From Pelomyxa schiedti (Eukaryota; Protista; Evosea): 64,000 bases of DNA. Below are positions 25,301 through 35,157 of this stretch, piece after piece. The stretch is taken from assembly GCA_020536535.1 (NCBI GenBank), contig JAHLWZ010000605.1:21625-85624 (forward strand), in the 5' to 3' direction. Each line of letters begins with the position of its first letter. The first letter of the stretch is position 1. The position numbers and the translations under genes are program-made. Under the pieces are notes generated by a model. It did not search any database. It saw only the letters and a list, made by a program, of their open reading frames with translations, and was not told the DNA's origin.

Positions 25301-26933
25301 GCAAGTGATTTCCCAAAAGAGTGTCATTAAGGAAATGTACCATAGCCACACAATCACTGAAAAATATTATGGGTGAATAAAACAAGAAAAAGAATACTTG
25401 AGATTCACATCCGCAGCTTTATTAAGTTCAGCAAGTTCAGCTTGGTCTTCTTCGTGGTCAGCAATAAATGCTTCAACCTGAGCTTTTAATTCAGGGCTCG
25501 TTTCCCGATTCTCTCTAACAGCCTGTTGAATAATTAACTTATGAAAGCAAAAGTGTTTTAAGAATACCTCAAAAATACTAAGCACACCAAGACGCAGGAA
25601 GTCATTTCTGATCTCAACTCTCTCATCCACATCTTGAGTTGAACTAATCAACGAATTCACCAATGTAAGAGCAGTGACCTCTCAAAAGATGAGTTAAGAG
25701 AAATAGTAAAGTGCAGCAGTACTTTGACAGACAAGTCGGGATCATGTCTGATACAATCCACAAGAAGGGTGAATCGTATGCGCTCTCTCATAGTATACTT
25801 GTAATTAGAAAATGATTCTAGAACAAGTTTTGGCCCCTGAAAGTAACCATTACAAAAAAGTTCACAAACACCCTCCCATACTAGATCGTGGAACATGGTC
25901 ATTAATGAAAGAATTTCAAAAAGTAGTTTTTTCGTGGCAGAGTCTGAGTCGACAAGGCAAAGTGCGAGATGGTTAACAGAATCTTTTGTACTTGCCATTT
26001 CATCTCTCCCTGAAAATGAAGGTAGACTGACGAAAAGAAATAAATGAAATTACCTTCTGGGGTTGCTAAAAGCATTTTTAAGCACTGCACACACTCAAGC
26101 CTGAACTCAAGAAATTCTCCTCTTGGTCTCTCTCTGTGCTTTTCATGCTCGTGGAATAAGAGATTGAGCAAAACTGGCATGCCTTTCAGTTCTCGAAACG
26201 ACAGAGCCCACTCGGCAGGTTGGGTGTGAAGACAGGCTCCTATTGTTGTGAGAAAAAAAAAATGTAAGCTCTTAGGTCCACACTTAGGTCCGTGACGACG
26301 AGAACGGTTGGCTCTGCCTGTAATTTGATAATGAAATATCTTGGTGTAAGACGCTCAGATATGCCCGTGAACATGGTGTCAACATTTTCTCTATGCATTT
26401 GAATGAAGTGCCATTTAGATTCCCGGGCCATGGACTTGCTCATGTCATCAATTTGAGCTTTATCAAAGCCCAATTCTTCAAGTAAATTCGTGAACAAGAA
26501 TTGCAATTCCTTGTCATCAGGAATTCCGTTCTCCTCATTCATATCAGAGGTTGTGGAGGCAGCTCGAGATCTCATCTTTTTCCTCTCTTCCTCTCTTTCT
26601 TTCTGCAGCTGTTTAGCCAATTTCTTTTCTCTCTCGACAGCCTTCTCCAGCTAAAAGAAATGTCAAGGGGGAGTTGGAAGGTTTTTTTGTTGTTGTTGTT
26701 TTAATTTAACGAGTAAACCCTACCTCCTGCCTTTCCCTCAGCCTCACTTTTTCCCTCCGTTTTTCGTCTTCTTTGGCCATTTGTTCTTGCTTCTTTCTGG
26801 CCTTGTCAGTTAAAGGTGACCCCAATGCTGACGAAGTCAATGATGACGAGGAAGAAGACGAAGACGAAGAAAGTGGTGCGCCACTGGCAGCGGGTGACGT
26901 CACTGAAGTACTCGAAGTCGTCAGTTTGGACAT
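22329..26933 (-). CDS. Diaphanous-related formin (GBD/FH3, FH1, FH2, DAD)
   Basis: GBD-like ELQFLFTNLLEELGF...SKWHFI; FH3 CMVNSLISSTQDVDERVEIRNDFLRLG-like segment; FH1 polyproline runs at 24380-24640; FH2 fragments (AIKNAILACN..L, LGLFMSAIAELIVF); DAD-like MQEMMEQLSSGNTFR. The exact stop is uncertain (22329, or further toward 21874). Confidence 0.9.
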
Positions 26934-27215
26934 TTTGTTGTCTTTTGTCGCTAATACGGCAGCGCTACGTCGTTACGTCGGTTCGCGTACGGGTAGTTAT
27001 TTTTTTTTATTTTCTAAAGAGTCAAAAATTTGTCGTTTGATGTTGGGTTGTCACTAATTTGCGCTTTAGTATCGGATACCCAAAGCAGGCAACAACAATT
27101 TGTTGTTGTAGATTGATGGGCTCTCAGTAAGGAACAACAAGCCTCAACAATAAAAAACCCCACAGTTTTCACAGTAAAAATTACAACTTTGGTTCTCAGC
27201 AGCTCACCACACCCC

Positions 27216-30200
27216 TCATTCAGAAGTGTTTTTGCTCTTGTGCTTGTGATGGCTTTCTTCTTTGGGATTGTGTCTCTCCTTGGTAATAAGTGTTAGTGTA
27301 TCTAGAGTAGTTAAGTTGGCTTACAAGGGCTTCATGGAGTGCTTGGACAGCGGACTTGTAGTAAGAGTCAGGGATGGGTATCGTGTCAATTTCGCCTTCA
27401 CTACTGGCTGAAAGATCCTCATACAATCTGGGAGAGCTCTTAGAACTAGGGGAAAAAGCGTGGTGACCAACTTGTGCATCTTCGGAGTGTTGTCTTGTAG
27501 CCAGTCATTGAACTTCGTCATGAAAGCCTCTTTATTAGAAAAATCTACACCATTGGCCAGATTCTGCAGCATCTTCGTTATAATTACGAGTTCTCGTCGA
27601 ATCGAGTCAGGTGGTGGTGTGGGAAGTAGTCCATAACTGGCATTGCTTAGTTGGTTCAGATGTTTTATAATTCGTTAGTACCTTTCCGGTACTGCAATGG
27701 CAGTATTGATAAACCGCAGAACAAAGAATGCCCCAAGTGAAGGTCTCACATATTTTGGAGCCTTATGCTCCACCTGTAGAATGAGCTAAGCACGACCACA
27801 TTTGAGAGGGTTGACATACTTCGATTTTAATGTGGTGACATATCTTCCGTAGAGATACAGGTAATTTGCCAATAGACCGCGTTATTTGAAGGAAGAATTT
27901 GGTGGCTATAAGTCGCACGCCTATGGCGTTCAGATCCTCGTCCACCATGTCATTCATTTGACTTGGATTTACCTTAACACAGTTCAGCGTAAAAGACGGT
28001 GGTGTATGAAAACCTCATAGTTTGTAGTGACCAGAGACACAGAGCCTTCGTGGCTTTCCTAATTGTTCATTAACGAAACCCAGTAAGGAGAGACAAAAAA
28101 CTGTTTGATCAGCTGCTTCTTGTAGAATATTTTCAAATAAAACGGATAGGGTCTGGAATAAATATTGCAGTCCCACAATTTTGGAGTAGAACTAACTACA
28201 TTAAAATATGATAAGTTCAATACCAGTCTCTACCTTGAAACATTTTGTTGAGGCACTATTTGAACGGAACATTACTTCAGGATCTCTGGCATCTCCCACT
28301 TCTTTGGATATCAAGTGCATAATCTGTCCTTGTGAGCACCAGGTACTAAAATACAAAATGTCTCTACCAGTGCAGCTCCTTGTTTGTGTTGCTCAAAGAA
28401 GTACACAAGAGCTTTGCAGAGATTCTCCGATTCAGTTATGTCCATTGACTTCACGAGGTGATCAACAGTAGTCCAGTCGCTATTTCGGAAGTCTTGCACC
28501 TGATCACTAAATTAGAAGTACAAAGGTCAAATAAAATTCACCAATAAGTCTTCTATCTGGGTTTTATCAACCTCGGAAAGAGGTAACCCAATGGTACTTA
28601 CATCAGAAAATCTGTGGAACAACGATGAAGATTGGTTAAGTGGGTTTTCAGGCTTACTGGTGTTTGACCAGTTCAGAAAAATGTAACTGGAGTCTCTTTG
28701 TTCTGCGGTGCCGAACAATTGCAAGTACAATAAAAGCAAAGAAGATAGCTCCAACGAAAGGGATCACAAGTAATGCGAGAAGAGTGTAGCTCTTTTTTGA
28801 GTCTCCTACGGCGGTATCAGAAACTACTCTGATGCTTCAAGCGTGGTGGTACCTGTATCATCTGGTGTCTCACAAAAAGCTCCATGCCACTTCGCCCAAC
28901 AGTTACAGTAAGTTCCAGTGGTATTTGAAGTGCAACTGCCGTGTCCGCATTTCACAAGGTAGCAGGGACTAAAGGAAGGGATGAGTTTGGTAACATTTAT
29001 GAAAGCAAACTCATGTGCTGTCTTGAAGAAGGATACTGTACTATAGACGGTTTCCCAGCCATTTGTAATTCCCAAAAACCAGGAGTAATTGGTGTCAGAC
29101 TGGAGACGTATTTTCTGTGATGTGGACTGGCTGGTGATAGTAATATTTTCAGCAACACTCCATGAACTATTGGTCGTTGTATTGACGTTCTGGCTTTCTT
29201 TTTTCCCGCTTATTTTTTACTTGAAAAAGAGGAAGAATGTACCAGCAAGTAAAATCAGTTGGAATTGATTGTCATATGTCTTACTTGGGCACACATGACC
29301 CCAAGTAGTAACATTTCCCCATTGAAACAATACATCTTCACTGTATGTTACATTTGCAAGATCAACAGGAAATAGCAGCAAGGGTGCTTCTGGAGACCAG
29401 TCATAACAGCATAAAAATCGCAAATAATCTGTTGTGGATTGCACTTGATCCTATATTGAATGAGTGCAAGGAGCCAATAAAAGAAAGAAACCTTGTTTGT
29501 TACTCGAACACGCCAATAGTACCTAATAATAAGAAAATGCAGTGAATAAAATAAATATCGAAGCTGGGATATCGGGTACACACGTTTGATCTAACACCCA
29601 ATTGGTGGTGTTGAAAGTCAGAGTGGACGGTTCTGCAGAAGATTGCTCAATCACATCAGCTGGACTGGAGGGCCAGTCGTTGGTTTTCGTGCTCAAAAAT
29701 AATGAATACTTTCTGGCGCTTGAACTCTTGCATTCTGTTCCCCAGTCATCGAGGGAAGAAATTTGAATCTGGTCCTCTGGGCGGACTATCATTCCTTCAA
29801 TGGGATTTTTCTGGGCTGGATATCCAGGTTTGGATGGTATGCAAACTTGAAGGTGTATTAAGTAAGACTTAAGAATAAATCGTGCAAAACATACTGGTAA
29901 AGTTGAAATGCTGGGGTTCATCCGACTGAAGGTCCCCGTTGGATGAAATTACCCACCACTCATAGAATCCCTCTTCAAGAGAAAGGACAAGCTGGATAGA
30001 CGCCGTAGTGGCTGAAATAGAGAAGGTGGTACCCTTCTTAAGAAGCCGTAATGTGGAATCGTTCTTCTGTGTAGAGAAGCAACTATGGCCATAATCTGAT
30101 ATGGTCCAATTAAACACCACAGACAGTTGATCCAGTGTCGAAGCTGGCTTCGGGAATTCAAGTACAGGTATAGATGGGGATCTCATTTGGCATAAATAAA

Positions 30201-33200
30201 AGCTGCGTGCTTCAGAAAACACCTATTCAATATTGGATGTGGAAAAACCAATCACAGTTTTACGATAGATTCAGTGTTGTTCACAGAAACCTGCCAGGTC
30301 CAATTCCCAGGATAAAGTGGAAATTCAACAAGGTAACTTTGTTCATTGATTAGAGTGTTCACGAATTGAAAAGTAGTGCAACCTTGTAGTTGTAGTTGCA
30401 GTTGCAACAGAGAAGTGTGTGGTACTGTTGAAGATATACAGTATGGAAATGCAGGGCTTTACATAAGGACAACTTGTTCCACAATCTGGAGCACTCCACT
30501 TTAGGGAAAGAGCTTTATCGAAGTCACGGAGTTCATTTGCCTGCGGTTCCTGAAGAACGGGGGCTACAGGCCCCTTTCTGACACACACACTAAAAGAGCT
30601 CAGCGCGAGTGGTGTGAAGGATGCACCATTGAAATAACGTAGATGCCACTGGTAAGTAGCAACAATGGCGGGGAAAGAAGACGCTGGAACGTATGAAGAA
30701 ATAGTGGTATTATAAATCACGTCATCTATGTAGGCAAGCCCAGTGCTGTCAAACACAGTAAAGTCAATGTACGAAGGGTACACTGAATTACAGTTATCCC
30801 CTAAAGGAGGGGCAACCCATGCGAAGGATACTTCGTCATTGGTTACAACAGCTCCAATAGAAGGGACTGTGAGTGTCGGTGCAACAATCAAAGTGTCTGG
30901 AACACAATAGGTGAATGTGCTCGAGGTAACTCCAGAACATTTACTTAGAGTGCACGCTGAAACGGATACAGAGTTCGCCACCCCATCCACTACAAAGGCA
31001 TCAAAATATGACTGAGTTACTGGGAAACTATAAGGTTGACTATTGAAAACCACTGAGTATGTCTGAGTTTGATCACAGGTTGTTCTCCAAGATGAAGGTT
31101 GCTGCCATCTAACAGTTACAGTGGATGACCCTGTGACTTGTCCACTGGGAGTAACATTTTGTGGTGGATAAGGTGTCTCTACTAAGCAAATGAAGAACGA
31201 TCTTTCTGATGATGTAGAGAGTAAGGCTCCATTCCATGCCGAGACACGCCACCACCACCATCCTGGAGAGAAGTCATCTGTCAAAGATTTAGATGACGTA
31301 ACAGTTTGATTCCAGGGAGCAGTTGTGCTGTTCCGTACTTCGACGATGAATAGTCTCAAGGTAGTGCCATTACAAACTTTACCAAAGGACTTGTATGTTT
31401 TCCCCCACTCCAATGTGACAGTTGTAGAAAGGAATGTACTATTCGTGACAGGTGAAGAGAGGAGTGGTGTGTCTGGGTACGTATTGTTGCATGTTACTGG
31501 AACGGAGACAGTCGAATTCGTCGAAACGGTTTTATTTACAGTCACTGTCTGATTCACTATCACAGTGGTATTCATAGCTACTGTGGTGTTGACAGCAACT
31601 GTAGTGTTTACCAATTTGGTGGTATTTACTAACTTCGTGCTATTCACAGTGATAGTGACATTTACTGTACAATTTGCAAACATAGTTTCACCTGCTGTAC
31701 ATGAAACATAAGTAAAAGTTCCCCCAGAGCAAGCTACCGCTGTTGTGCCATTTGTTGTACAATTCACAGTTTTCGTCTCATTTACAACAGATACGGTTTT
31801 TTCTTCAGATATTGTTACATTTTCTGCAACAGTTGTGTTGATTGCCACAGTTGAATTAATAGTAATCGTGGTGTTCATAATGACAGTAGTATTGACGGGA
31901 ATAGTAGTGTTGACTGAGACTGTACTGTTCACAGGCACCACAGTTGAACTCTGTGGATGGTATTCTATACTGCCAATCCCAACACTGCCATGGTGGCCAT
32001 TACTGGCGACCACATACCACCAGGCTACACCTTCATGTAAGTAAACTGTAAGATTTCCTGATGTATTGGCTTCTCGTATAAGGATCGTTTCATTGAATAC
32101 AACAGTAATATTGCATTTCGGTGAGTCAAGGCATGATTGGCCACATGATGGAATATCCCAGGATATTGTAATGTTGCTTTGCTCTGTGACATACGGAGAC
32201 CCATTCGGAGTAAGTACTGGCTCATCTGGTGGAACCAATATGCACATTTGAACACTTTGGACGGGAGAAACAGGATTTAGCATTCCATTGTGAACCCCCA
32301 AGGCCCAATATAAAAACGAAGCTGTTTTATCCACTTCCGTAGGCATGAATTCTGTTGAATTCAGATCCAAAATGGAGTGCCAATATCGAGAGTCATTGTA
32401 CGAGGAAATATCATGTGAATACCAAAGCAATAAAGCGGGCTGATCGTATTCACAGTTAAACCCATATGATACACTATCCCAGGCAAGAGAAGTCACATCA
32501 ACAATAAACTTCTCAGATGTAAGCGGGGATAGCAGGACTGGATCAATCTCAGGGTATGACGTGCATAGTCGAAAAGTATTTAGACTCGTGTTCGTCTGCT
32601 TCGCTGTATTGTCTGCTGTCACATACCACATGTGTAACCCAACAGCCACAACAGTATTTATGGATTGACCATGGGTCGTCCCGATTTGTGAACCATCAAG
32701 ATAGACAGTATAAATGCCCTCTATTTTTAGAAGGTGAATTGACCGTATTTAAATATAATCGTGTAACCTGTGCCTGGGCAACTGGTACCCATATTGCTAG
32801 TGGGGTACCATGATAAAGATATATTCAGAAAAGAAGTGTTCAGTAAAGGGAACAAGGCTCCATTCAAAGGATATTCCAATGAAAATGGCCAAGGTGAAGT
32901 TGGTGTGCAATAGGTGAAGGTCCAAGTGTCAGATTGCGACGTGTAAATAGTATTACTGGCTACTACATACCAGTTGTATCCACCGTCCCCCAATGCAGTA
33001 TTGTGGAGATACGTGGGCACGGTAAGATTGGAAGCAATTCTACTTGGAGAATTGTTCGTCTGACCAAGAAATACATCGAACCAGTTGTCAGCAGGATAAA
33101 AGAGATTGAATCCTTGTGGTAGTTAATGCGCGAATAGTTGCCTAATACATAAAAGTCTACCTGTTTGCTTGCAGATGAACCAATGTGTAGATGTGCAAAC

Positions 33201-35157
33201 GTCAGCCAACCAGCCAGAGGCTGAAGCATATACACAATCCTTGGTTGGCGCATTTGAAGTCACTCCACCAGAGGGAACATAGCTCAGCTTTGAGCCATCT
33301 AGCCATTCAAAGGTTTCTTCTACTCTATTTTCTGAGTGAGACGATGGAATATAAATGCGGAGTTACCTAGAGTCCGAAAGGCCTATCCAAAAAGAATTTC
33401 CGTTCAGCAGGCTTGATAAGTATGTGTATTCCTCATTGGATAGAACGGATGCAAGGGAGACGTCCACTCCGGAGGACTGACAAGTCTTTAGAGCGGAGTC
33501 GAAGTCTTTTCCAGTCTGCACAAATTTATAGCAAGCAACAGGATTGGAGCTATCTGTTGGCCAAAAGATATCAAATCCAGCTGAGCAGCTGTGGCCTTGA
33601 AATTTGATGGTTATTTGATCAATGTATGAAAGTCTTGCTTACCCTTATAGAATCCCCATTGCAGGAGAGGAGGGTTCAGTGGCCTGTAGGCCCCATTACT
33701 TGGGGAGTAAGGAATGGGAGTCAATGGATATTTGGCGGATGTAACACGAAAGGAACTCTTAGTGGAGGTATTTGTGGCCTGCAACGAACCAACTTTGAGC
33801 ACTGCGGTAACGTTCTTTTTTTTTTCCCCCGTTGTTAACTGAGTAAATAAGATTTTAAGAAGAAACCCATGTGCAAGAACTATCGGAAGACAGGGAAATT
33901 TGTAGGCTGGTCGAGTTCAGATCACGTTCTATTCGGGAGAGTGTACTGTCTCCAACACAATTATACCAAACATCATATGTTATCTTGGCGCCAGTGCAGA
34001 CAGTCCCAGTAATCACAGTAGACCAAGTCAACGTAACGGATCGAGACTGTGAGAGTTAGAAAATTCGCTAACTAACTAAAGGCACTCACATAGCCTATCG
34101 AATCTGATTTGGGAGAAGTAAGAAGAGGTGTGGCTGGAGGTCTGAGGACACAAAAACTCTGTAATGGTTCTACAGCAGATATTTTTTTTTCTGAGCAGCG
34201 ATAGTTCACATAAATTGAGGCCCAGTCCAAGCGCCAACAGATTCCACTAGCAGTAAGAGGAAGCTCATATGAGCAACTAGTTAGATTCTTATTGCTTCCG
34301 CAGGCACTTTCCAGTCTTGATGTGAGATCACCGCAGTACTCTTAGGAAGTGTTAGTGTCGGATGTAGTTGTCAAAGGTATTCGTACTCGAATCCCCGGAT
34401 GGATTGGAGTAGCATGATCTCGATGAGTCCTTCCAACCAAATGCCTTTTCTACATGTACAATGTGGAGAGGAGTAGGACAAGAGATAGTTATCCAGCGCC
34501 TCCAGTCGTACCAGTATATTCCCGGATTGCTGCAGATAAACCTTAATCATGTGAGATCAAATGCATAGCTGCAAAACAAAGATACCCCAACTGCGGCAAA
34601 GGCGCTGCTCTCCAGTAGTACTGTCCAGGTTGGAAGGCCACACCTAGAATTAAAAGAATGTGAGGAAGACTGATCCAAAGATTATTTCGTGGGTAAAACA
34701 TTTCAAACACCACAATGAAAGAAACAGTAAGAGACACAAACATCGTAACAGTACTTATAACTCTGTCGTTGGTATTTATTGATGATGTTCTCCTGGTTCC
34801 CAGCACGGTAGTGAGCGGCGAGGCAGTTCCCCATTCAATAGCGAACTGCGCCAAGTCACCCAACGTGGAAGTACTCGGCTGGCAGTAAGTCGTAAAACCC
34901 GCATATGACACCTTAAATTGCACAGTAGCGCTGGCCTCCGCCGGTCCCAAAATCCATCCACTGGCAGAGGTAACCGAAGCGCTCTGTGTATAACCAGGGC
35001 ACGTACTGCAGTCAGTGCTACAAGACGAACTCTGAGATCTGCATGGCAAGGCAGCATACAAAACAACCAAAATTGCGGCCACAAACAGAGATCTCGCAAC
35101 CACGACAGGTTTCATCTCCTTCATACACCGGTGTGGTGCACCATGCACGCGTTGCAT
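27216..35157 (-). CDS. Receptor-type RasGAP: signal peptide, ten or more Cys-bracketed FN3-like repeats, EGF-like domain, one TM helix, cytosolic RasGAP domain
   Basis: Signal peptide MKPVVVARSLFVAAILVVLYAALPCRS. Repeats P-x-L-x-S-P..W..GxxC..WxVxAxNG..FxxC. EGF CYLVKCGHGSCTSNTTGTYCNCWAKWHGAFC. An in-frame 47-nt intron (28852-28806) leads to TM YTLLALLVIPFVGAIFFAFIVLAIV-RHRRTKR. Further in-frame GT-AG junctions reach RasGAP motifs MFRSNSASTK, VGLQYL, FFVLRFINTAIAVP and LVIITKMLQNLAN. Not every ectodomain junction was checked. Confidence 0.8.
31480..31935 (-). repeat. Hexapeptide N-x-T repeat insert (18-nt period) in the receptor ectodomain
   Basis: VNSTVS VNTTIP VNTTVI MNTTIT INSTVA INTTVA ENVTIS ... 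NSTKLV NTTKLV NTTVAV NTTVAM NTTVIV NQTVTV NKTVST NSTVSV; 21 N-x-S/T sequons counted in about 150 aa. Confidence 0.9.

Follow-up and report, generated by a model that had tools for sequence, protein, structure and literature searches.

In the textbook picture as we know it, RasGAPs, the GTPase-activating proteins (GAPs) of Ras family GTPases, are soluble and are recruited by other receptors, and plexins are to our knowledge the sole receptor class with a built-in GAP of that fold. Plexins inactivate Rap locally, and in Dictyostelium cytosolic NF1 and C2GAP-type GAPs act at macropinocytic and phagocytic cups. Ras and RasGAPs shape feeding cups in Dictyostelium (PMC4374526), and the GAP activity of plexins is regulated by dimerisation (PMC8011033). 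Plexins have been placed only in choanoflagellates and animals, and the papers on their origin treat them as a choanozoan novelty built from pre-existing parts (PMC6374515, PMC8011033). Here we describe a gene of the amoeba Pelomyxa schiedti, an organism described as intron-rich and sequenced from single cells (PMC8887013), in which a RasGAP domain is joined to a transmembrane helix and a large ectodomain. The gene lies on the minus strand of a 64,000-nucleotide (nt) stretch of contig JAHLWZ010000605.1 (assembly GCA_020536535.1, positions 21,625 to 85,624), hereafter the window, whose own numbering is used throughout.

An initial annotation of the window, made from its letters and open reading frames (ORFs), had described a receptor-type RasGAP at this locus and had interpreted it as an independently built, plexin-analogous receptor. 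That observation is confirmed by the analysis presented here, and the interpretation is supported in part.

Results

A single transcript joins ectodomain, membrane helix and RasGAP

One transcript carries the ectodomain, from its last repeat onward, together with the transmembrane and GAP parts of the protein. Contigs of three single-cell RNA runs from one sample, and of one DNA run, were placed on 27101-33100. All 15 joints listed in the RNA contigs are minus-strand GT-AG joints of 41-47 nt, and the DNA-run contigs on the same interval contain none of them. They include the introns 28852-28806, 28657-28612, 28541-28500 and 28367-28324, so that the GT-AG splicing proposed in the initial annotation for the first of these and the next three introns is now seen in RNA. 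Single RNA contigs of 1668 and 1626 nt span ~29449 to ~27200, covering the last ectodomain repeat, the EGF module, the transmembrane helix, the juxtamembrane exon of 70 nt and the RasGAP exons without exception. One of them, the Logan contig L002 (1668 nt, SRR23919877), is, after 24 nt of adapter, identical base for base to the spliced model from 29407 to 27191; it crosses 13 introns and ends 25 nt beyond the stop codon, and the database ORF derived from it, P0001 (530 amino acids, aa), equals the last 515 aa of the model. The transcript thus neither terminates after the EGF and transmembrane exons nor leaves the latter unused, as L002 spans the EGF module, the helix and all RasGAP exons, and the transmembrane exon (28805-28658) is found in the contigs of all three runs as well as in L002. 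Since one RNA contig runs through ectodomain repeat, EGF module, helix and RasGAP, the chain is real, and the helix with its RHRRTKR stop-transfer continues into a contiguous RasGAP as had been claimed.

These data bear directly on the possibility that two adjacent genes, one for a secreted or membrane glycoprotein and one for a cytosolic RasGAP, were joined by read-through, mis-assembly or an over-eager model. Such an account could point to the predicted 5' third of the gene and to thin RNA contig coverage at 29450-29895. It has to contend, however, with an uninterrupted and correctly spliced RNA contig leading from the last ectodomain repeat through EGF, helix and GAP to the 3' untranslated region, with the independent annotation of the same architecture in four P. 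schiedti genes and its occurrence in transcriptomes of other genera, and with the presence of only one copy of the gene in the window, collinear end to end with its paralogue P0154. We therefore give an artefact of this kind almost no credence.

In a six-frame reading of the window (GC content ~43%) the gene appears as a run of stop-free pieces on the minus strand, from a start codon ATG at 35157 down to a stop codon ending at 27216, separated by introns mostly of 41-50 nt. Within the resulting model (Model2, Table 1), 29449-27216 and most of 33005-30051 are verified by RNA; 35157-33005 (the 5' third) and 29895-29450 are predicted, on the grounds that the ORF continues there, that the introns are short and GT-AG and that the paralogues are collinear. 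RNA confirms introns 30263-30223 and 29242-29198, intron 30382-30337 is implied by the record positions of RNA contig X1 record 2, and introns 29894-29846, 29583-29523 (or 29595-29523) and 29491-29451 are predicted. The details that are uncertain, namely a candidate 111-nt intron in exon 1 (34754-34644), the 61- or 73-nt length of the intron ending at 29523 and a 31-nt micro-exon (29522-29492), leave the transmembrane and GAP parts untouched. One further intron, of 42 nt (29010-28969), lies inside the ORF that precedes the EGF module, and because it is stop-free and in frame it is not visible by ORF reading. Together with the juxtamembrane exon 28611-28542, the last intron 27324-27279 and the C-type lectin domain at 33593-33165, all of which are present, it adds to what the initial annotation had seen.

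Several alternative structures were considered and rejected. An intron at 29397-29336 is contradicted by an RNA contig that covers this stretch without a gap, a 23-nt intron near 28340 was implausible and is replaced in RNA by the 44-nt intron 28367-28324, and a 10-nt micro-exon at 28611-28602 proved to be part of the 70-nt exon. Read-through of exon 1 was set aside in favour of a probable intron there, and a 62-nt intron at 33642-33581 in favour of a 47-nt one at 33642-33596, which was chosen because it retains a Cys conserved in the paralogues. The RNA-confirmed introns across 27279-32767 are extremely uniform in length (41-47 nt), with a donor consensus that is weak past the GT, and several of their lengths are multiples of three.

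The cytoplasmic part is a classical RasGAP by sequence

Judged by sequence, the cytoplasmic GAP is a classical, unsplit RasGAP of the NF1/p120 type that retains every catalytic residue, and not a GAP of the plexin type. Pfam PF00616 matches residues 264-449 of P0001 over the whole profile (positions 1-207) with 87.2 bits against a cut-off of 28.3 (E 1.8e-24). In the PDB the best match is the GAP-related domain (GRD) of NF1 (E 2.8e-26), followed by p120GAP, SynGAP and IQGAP, and a profile of the whole family finds NF1 at E 2.7e-64 and no plexin at E<=10; Pfam likewise gives no Plexin_cytopl match. The arginine finger that had been placed near 28265 is encoded at 28266-28264, and the FxxLRF and KMLQNLAN motifs claimed with it are also present, with the Arg of FFVLRF at 27716-27714 and the Lys of KMLQNLAN at 27575-27573. 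In the alignment with the NF1 GRD, FRSNS falls on the FRGNS finger loop, VLRFIN on FLRFIN and KMLQNLAN on KILQSIAN.

The AlphaFold2 (AF2) model of the cytoplasmic part is all-helical (predicted local distance difference test score, pLDDT, 88.4), with helices starting ~12 residues past the stop-transfer and a single disordered loop of 13-18 residues that corresponds to a 45-nt exon; the NF1 GRD alignment is otherwise contiguous. Foldseek places the NF1 GRD first (E 3.7e-12, template modelling (TM) score up to 0.89 on the target), then p120 and SynGAP, the three together at E 1e-12 to 1e-9, with plexins from rank 27 down at ~10% identity. Pfam detects no Sec14-PH, SH2, C2 or PH domain in this part of the protein.

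RasGAP-fold proteins without GAP activity are known, and IQGAP1/2 are among the matches, which raises the question of whether the tail could be a catalytically dead scaffold that, like IQGAP, binds and recruits active Ras. The matches to NF1, p120 and SynGAP, all of them active GAPs, are however far better than that to IQGAP, and in an alignment (A2) of 31 cytoplasmic parts from the transmembrane clade described below, the finger Arg, the FLR Arg (R232) and the KxLQNLAN Lys (K264), all present here, are invariant. That the finger Arg does not vary even between distant lineages speaks for selection on catalysis, and we consider a dead scaffold improbable.

Membrane topology

The locus is predicted to encode a type I single-pass glycoprotein of the plasma membrane. 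The full protein has just two hydrophobic windows, a signal-like segment at the N-terminus and the helix at aa 1838-1862; 58 N-glycosylation sequons lie upstream of the helix and one downstream, and Cys residues are divided 61 to 3 in the same sense. Taken together with the basic RHRRTKR that follows the helix, in accord with the positive-inside rule, these features are the signature of a type I membrane glycoprotein. The signal peptide of the initial annotation is graded probable: its hydrophobic window reaches 2.44 on the Kyte-Doolittle scale, and the N-termini of the paralogues are hydrophobic at the corresponding position. Two additional in-frame ATG codons, at 35124 and 35115, lie nearer to the hydrophobic core than the ATG at 35157.

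A modular ectodomain

The ectodomain, of ~1,800 aa, comprises a rod of 13-14 disulfide-bearing repeats of predicted fibronectin type III (FN3) fold, a non-canonical C-type lectin-like domain, a sequon-rich stalk and a single membrane-proximal EGF module. Ten or more FN3-like repeats had been claimed; an iterated local hidden Markov model (HMM) finds 13-14 of ~95 aa each, with a conserved Cys pair, a Trp and an N-G motif, and the number is identical in four paralogues. The Pfam fn3 profile gives no match on several of these repeats at E<=1 to 5. Repeat 11 (29902-30207), modelled by AF2 from 45 copies of the repeat, has seven strands and a pLDDT of 94.6, and the top 30 Foldseek matches for it are almost all FN3 domains (irisin, Eph, NCAM, titin, Sevenless), at TM scores of 0.55-0.69 and E-values of only ~3e-3. 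On the strength of the AF2 and Foldseek results the description 'FN3-like' is right at the level of fold, and the modelling suggests that the repeats have the FN3 fold although the fn3 sequence profile does not recognise them.

The first two repeats flank a module of ~105 aa (~34600-34160, minus strand) whose eight Cys are conserved and which is common to the paralogues. Profile searches of Pfam and the PDB gave no match for it, and a SUEL/rhamnose-lectin identity was rejected as neither search supported it. The third repeat is split by the insertion of the lectin-like domain into halves at 33751-33555 and 33227-32946 (minus strand), and the paralogues are arranged alike. Pfam Lectin_C matches the two exon halves of the insert with 26.7 and 27.6 bits against a cut-off of 22.6, and the paralogues with 54 bits; the best PDB matches are DC-SIGN and DC-SIGNR. 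The stalk between repeats 6 and 7 is a near-repetitive stretch of ~150 aa, rich in NxT/S and made of VNTT-like units. The EGF domain of the initial annotation is borne out by six Cys in the EGF pattern, and EGF-type matches occur at the same position in the relatives P0003 and P0016.

The next ORFs downstream on the minus strand (26240-26933) resemble the N-terminal regulatory region of a formin, with a Ser-rich start followed by a GBD/FH3-like stretch, an impression gained from their translation.

Table 1. Features of the receptor-type RasGAP gene in window coordinates, in order of transcription after the entry for the whole gene.
Feature	Position	Strand	Basis
Whole coding region, receptor-type RasGAP gene	27216..35157	minus	Model2 (28 exons, 2,214 aa): ORF and splice modelling, RNA joints, paralogue collinearity
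Probable signal peptide	35038..35115	minus	Met at 35115, basic n-region, ~17-residue hydrophobic core, small-residue site before QSS
FN3-like repeats 1 and 2 flanking ~105-aa 8-Cys module	33800..35010	minus	Local HMM; exon structure provisional
C-type lectin-like domain, two exons, within FN3-like repeat 3	33165..33593	minus	Pfam Lectin_C
FN3-like repeats 4-6	31993..32918	minus	Local HMM, E 1e-17 to 1e-23; within RNA contigs X1 record 2 and X2 record 5
Sequon-rich (NxT/S) stalk or insert between repeats 6 and 7	31498..31959	minus	Translation; covered by RNA contigs
FN3-like repeats 7-13	29055..31500	minus	Local HMM; AF2 and Foldseek on repeat 11
EGF-like module, six Cys in EGF pattern	28869..28967	minus	Weak Pfam EGF_2 match (E 0.03); exon flanked by RNA-confirmed introns
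Single transmembrane helix, aa 1838-1862	28714..28788	minus	Kyte-Doolittle 3.0 over 19 residues
Basic stop-transfer RHRRTKR	28693..28713	minus	Translation
Juxtamembrane segment and N-terminal GAP-fold helices, three exons including the 70-nt exon 28611-28542	28371..28692	minus	RNA joints; aligned to NF1 GRD from P0001 residue 242
RasGAP catalytic domain, seven exons	27552..28370	minus	Pfam PF00616, NF1 GRD alignment, AF2/Foldseek
C-terminal GAP-fold helices, short basic tail and stop codon; last intron 27324-27279	27216..27551	minus	RNA contigs, NF1 alignment, AF2

Paralogues and a wider transmembrane RasGAP family

At least four relatives at the level of paralogues exist in P. schiedti: KAH3746119.1 (P0003), KAH3757384.1 (P0008), P0153 and P0154. 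No protein from another source is as close to the window protein as those of P. schiedti. All four are collinear with the window protein over their full length at 37-50% identity (41-50% for P0003, P0153 and P0154) and share the order lectin, FN3-like repeats, EGF, transmembrane helix, RasGAP; identity at this level marks them as different genes from the one in the window. The P0154 locus equals the window in GC content, and the span of the gene exceeds its coding length by ~1.4 kb. In databases these relatives go under a generic name ('GTPase-activator protein for Ras family GTPase') or a wrong one, and none is labelled a receptor; P0153 (2,238 aa; Lectin_C and RasGAP) carries the name 'succinate dehydrogenase' from its source, an evident misnomer.

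Beyond Pelomyxa, an exhaustive HMMER scan with a single 54-aa GAP exon as query gave 491 matches, and our sampling of the family consists of the best 150 of these, among which are 52 long proteins. In most of the 52, a single transmembrane helix that carries a basic stop-transfer precedes KxLQNLAN by 245-340 aa. In a tree of 55 RasGAP domains, 31 transmembrane proteins are separated from the other 24 rows by a branch with 100% ultrafast bootstrap (UFBoot) and 97% SH-aLRT support, and four P. schiedti proteins form the group in which the window protein is nested (100/99). Every one of the 31 has the helix within that same distance of the motif (in P0001 the helix is at 160-178 and the motif at 441) and a K/R cluster after it. 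All 39 transmembrane rows in the tree may share a single origin of the transmembrane state. Long matches with no detected transmembrane helix, which served as cytosolic comparison rows, carry the RasGAP domain in PH, C2, START, CRAL-TRIO or RasGAP_C contexts.

The clade takes in Archamoebae, Discosea, Variosea, an apusomonad and a rigifilid; named sources of the family are Pelomyxa schiedti, Mastigamoeba balamuthi, Balamuthia mandrillaris, Gocevia fonbrunei, Soliformovum irregulare, Clastostelium recurvatum, Cavostelium apophysatum, Thecamonas trahens and Rigifila ramosa; further family sources are metagenomes and one match in a red-alga transcriptome that is possibly contamination. The ectodomains vary widely, from lectin and FN3-like repeats in Pelomyxa to TIG domains with disintegrins in Thecamonas, EGF domains, and arrays of PSI and IPT/TIG domains in Gocevia and Soliformovum. 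P0129 of Soliformovum irregulare has five PSI and five TIG domains and a TIG_plexin match above cut-off, followed by a transmembrane helix and a classical RasGAP, and P0145 of Gocevia fonbrunei, in the same clade, has a PSI and TIG stalk. In two Balamuthia mandrillaris members, P0010 and P0152, the ectodomain includes a 5'-nucleotidase C-terminal domain, and extracellular nucleotide sensing or processing could there be coupled to a RasGAP. The gene belongs to an old, monophyletic family of transmembrane RasGAPs with a conserved cytoplasmic module and swapped ectodomains.

Look-alikes in the ESM Atlas for the N-terminal regions of two family members, a beta-propeller for P0129 and a plexin cluster with a score of 0.87 for P0145, are to be read as leads only. 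Outside the main clade in the tree stand three giant single-pass proteins from metagenomes or transcriptomes, P0151 (3614 aa), P0058 (4016 aa) and P0160 (3623 aa); their ectodomains are SibA-like Ig or cadherin-like, and the transmembrane helix is followed by two or three RasGAP stretches. A search of an index of 5.8 billion proteins with the 778-aa exon returned no match, the gene itself included, the NxT-rich stalk having probably swamped the search words; with the cytoplasmic part of P0001 the same index gave only 5 proteins.

Discussion

The most probable explanation, in our judgement, is that the gene encodes a type I single-pass receptor with an intact classical RasGAP tail, in which contact at the ectodomain tunes local Ras/Rap hydrolysis. 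The GAP fold begins ~10-30 residues after the transmembrane helix, and in this model the helix would hold the arginine finger close to the inner leaflet, where lipid-anchored Ras or Rap is found. It is plausible that engagement of the ectodomain by a surface, a particle, matrix or a neighbouring cell alters the clustering or orientation of the receptor, and that this in turn changes GTP hydrolysis on Ras or Rap nearby, such that contact outside the cell would lead directly to a local 'Ras off' zone within it. This contact-driven inactivation of Ras/Rap is inferred, as are the ligand and the GTPase specificity.

Several of our results weigh against this model. The canonical Ca2+/sugar site was not found in the lectin-like domain when it was aligned with DC-SIGNR, where EPN is replaced by GVT, a Glu by Lys and WND by WLA, and a regulatory element such as the Rho-binding domain (RBD) of plexins is not visible in the cytoplasmic part by Pfam or AF2. 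The gene model is a prediction at 29450-29895 and over the 5' third, the signal peptide was judged by eye, and the RNA support consists of assembled contigs, which lose rare isoforms, from three libraries of one sample.

The first two of these points would also fit the main rival explanation, a constitutive membrane-anchored GAP whose ectodomain serves adhesion, the glycocalyx or sorting and whose tail lowers basal Ras-GTP without switching by a ligand. This alternative gains from a lectin-like domain that lacks sugar-binding residues, from a cytoplasmic part with no regulatory insert or autoinhibitory module recognisable by Pfam or AF2, and from a GAP that begins close to the membrane; the ectodomains of the family have, moreover, been freely exchanged, one of them for an enzyme-like 5'-nucleotidase domain. 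Set against it, though not decisively, are the lasting conservation of elaborate, lineage-specific ectodomains on one and the same tail, which is the pattern of signalling receptors, and a juxtamembrane segment that is conserved in the family consensus, as it is in plexins. We regard constitutive anchoring as a serious but rather unlikely alternative to a contact-regulated receptor.

A literature search that included RasGAP in combination with Amoebozoa, Thecamonas or single-pass terms returned no description of transmembrane or receptor RasGAPs, and the proteins of the family are already in public databases under generic or wrong names. In an apusomonad, a rigifilid and at least five genera of Amoebozoa a classical NF1-type RasGAP is hard-wired to a surface receptor, the ectodomains being of many kinds, and eukaryotic signalling would thereby gain a class of receptor enzyme. 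Such receptors would also offer a direct, testable path by which contact outside could inactivate Ras locally in cells that feed and move by means of Ras patches.

Comparison with known systems

In its catalytic domain the window protein matches the NF1 GRD and p120RasGAP both by sequence and by predicted fold, with FRxNS, FLR and KxLQNLAN in register. NF1 and p120 are cytosolic, however, and are brought to membranes by other domains or partners, whereas the GAP described here is fused to a transmembrane helix and an ectodomain of 1,800 aa. Receptor-type protein tyrosine phosphatases are surface receptors that combine a cytoplasmic off-switch enzyme with FN3 rods, and in plants the seven-transmembrane protein AtRGS1 (7TM-RGS1) fuses a receptor to a GAP for a G protein. 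Their catalytic domains and substrates are unrelated to those of the window protein and there is no homology between them, so the likeness is one of analogy only.

Plexins provide the closest parallel in architecture, being type I receptors with a large modular ectodomain and a RasGAP-fold GAP just beneath the membrane, after a juxtamembrane segment, and the signalling logic is plausibly shared. They differ in that the window GAP is not split by an RBD, and Pfam finds no Sema, PSI or TIG/IPT match on any exon piece of the gene or its close paralogues. The initial annotation was right to the extent that the protein is plexin-analogous without being a plexin, given the lack of Sema, PSI and IPT domains, the unsplit GAP and NF1 as best match. 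The notion of a lone invention fares less well, as the gene has its place in an old clade of transmembrane RasGAPs, and the PSI-IPT stalks of some members weaken the description 'independently built'.

The same members, P0129 and P0145, whose PSI and IPT/TIG stalks extend the likeness to plexins, bear on the origin of plexins themselves. We put forward only tentatively, and hold to be doubtful, the idea that the transmembrane RasGAP family is the ancient stock of plexin-type receptors, or at least that receptors built of propeller, PSI/IPT stalk, transmembrane helix and RasGAP-fold GAP predate Choanozoa. Were it true, the window gene would represent the branch of this superfamily of receptors that has lectin and FN3 domains, and signalling straight from a receptor to Ras 'off' would be ancestral in amoeboid Amorphea and CRuMs.

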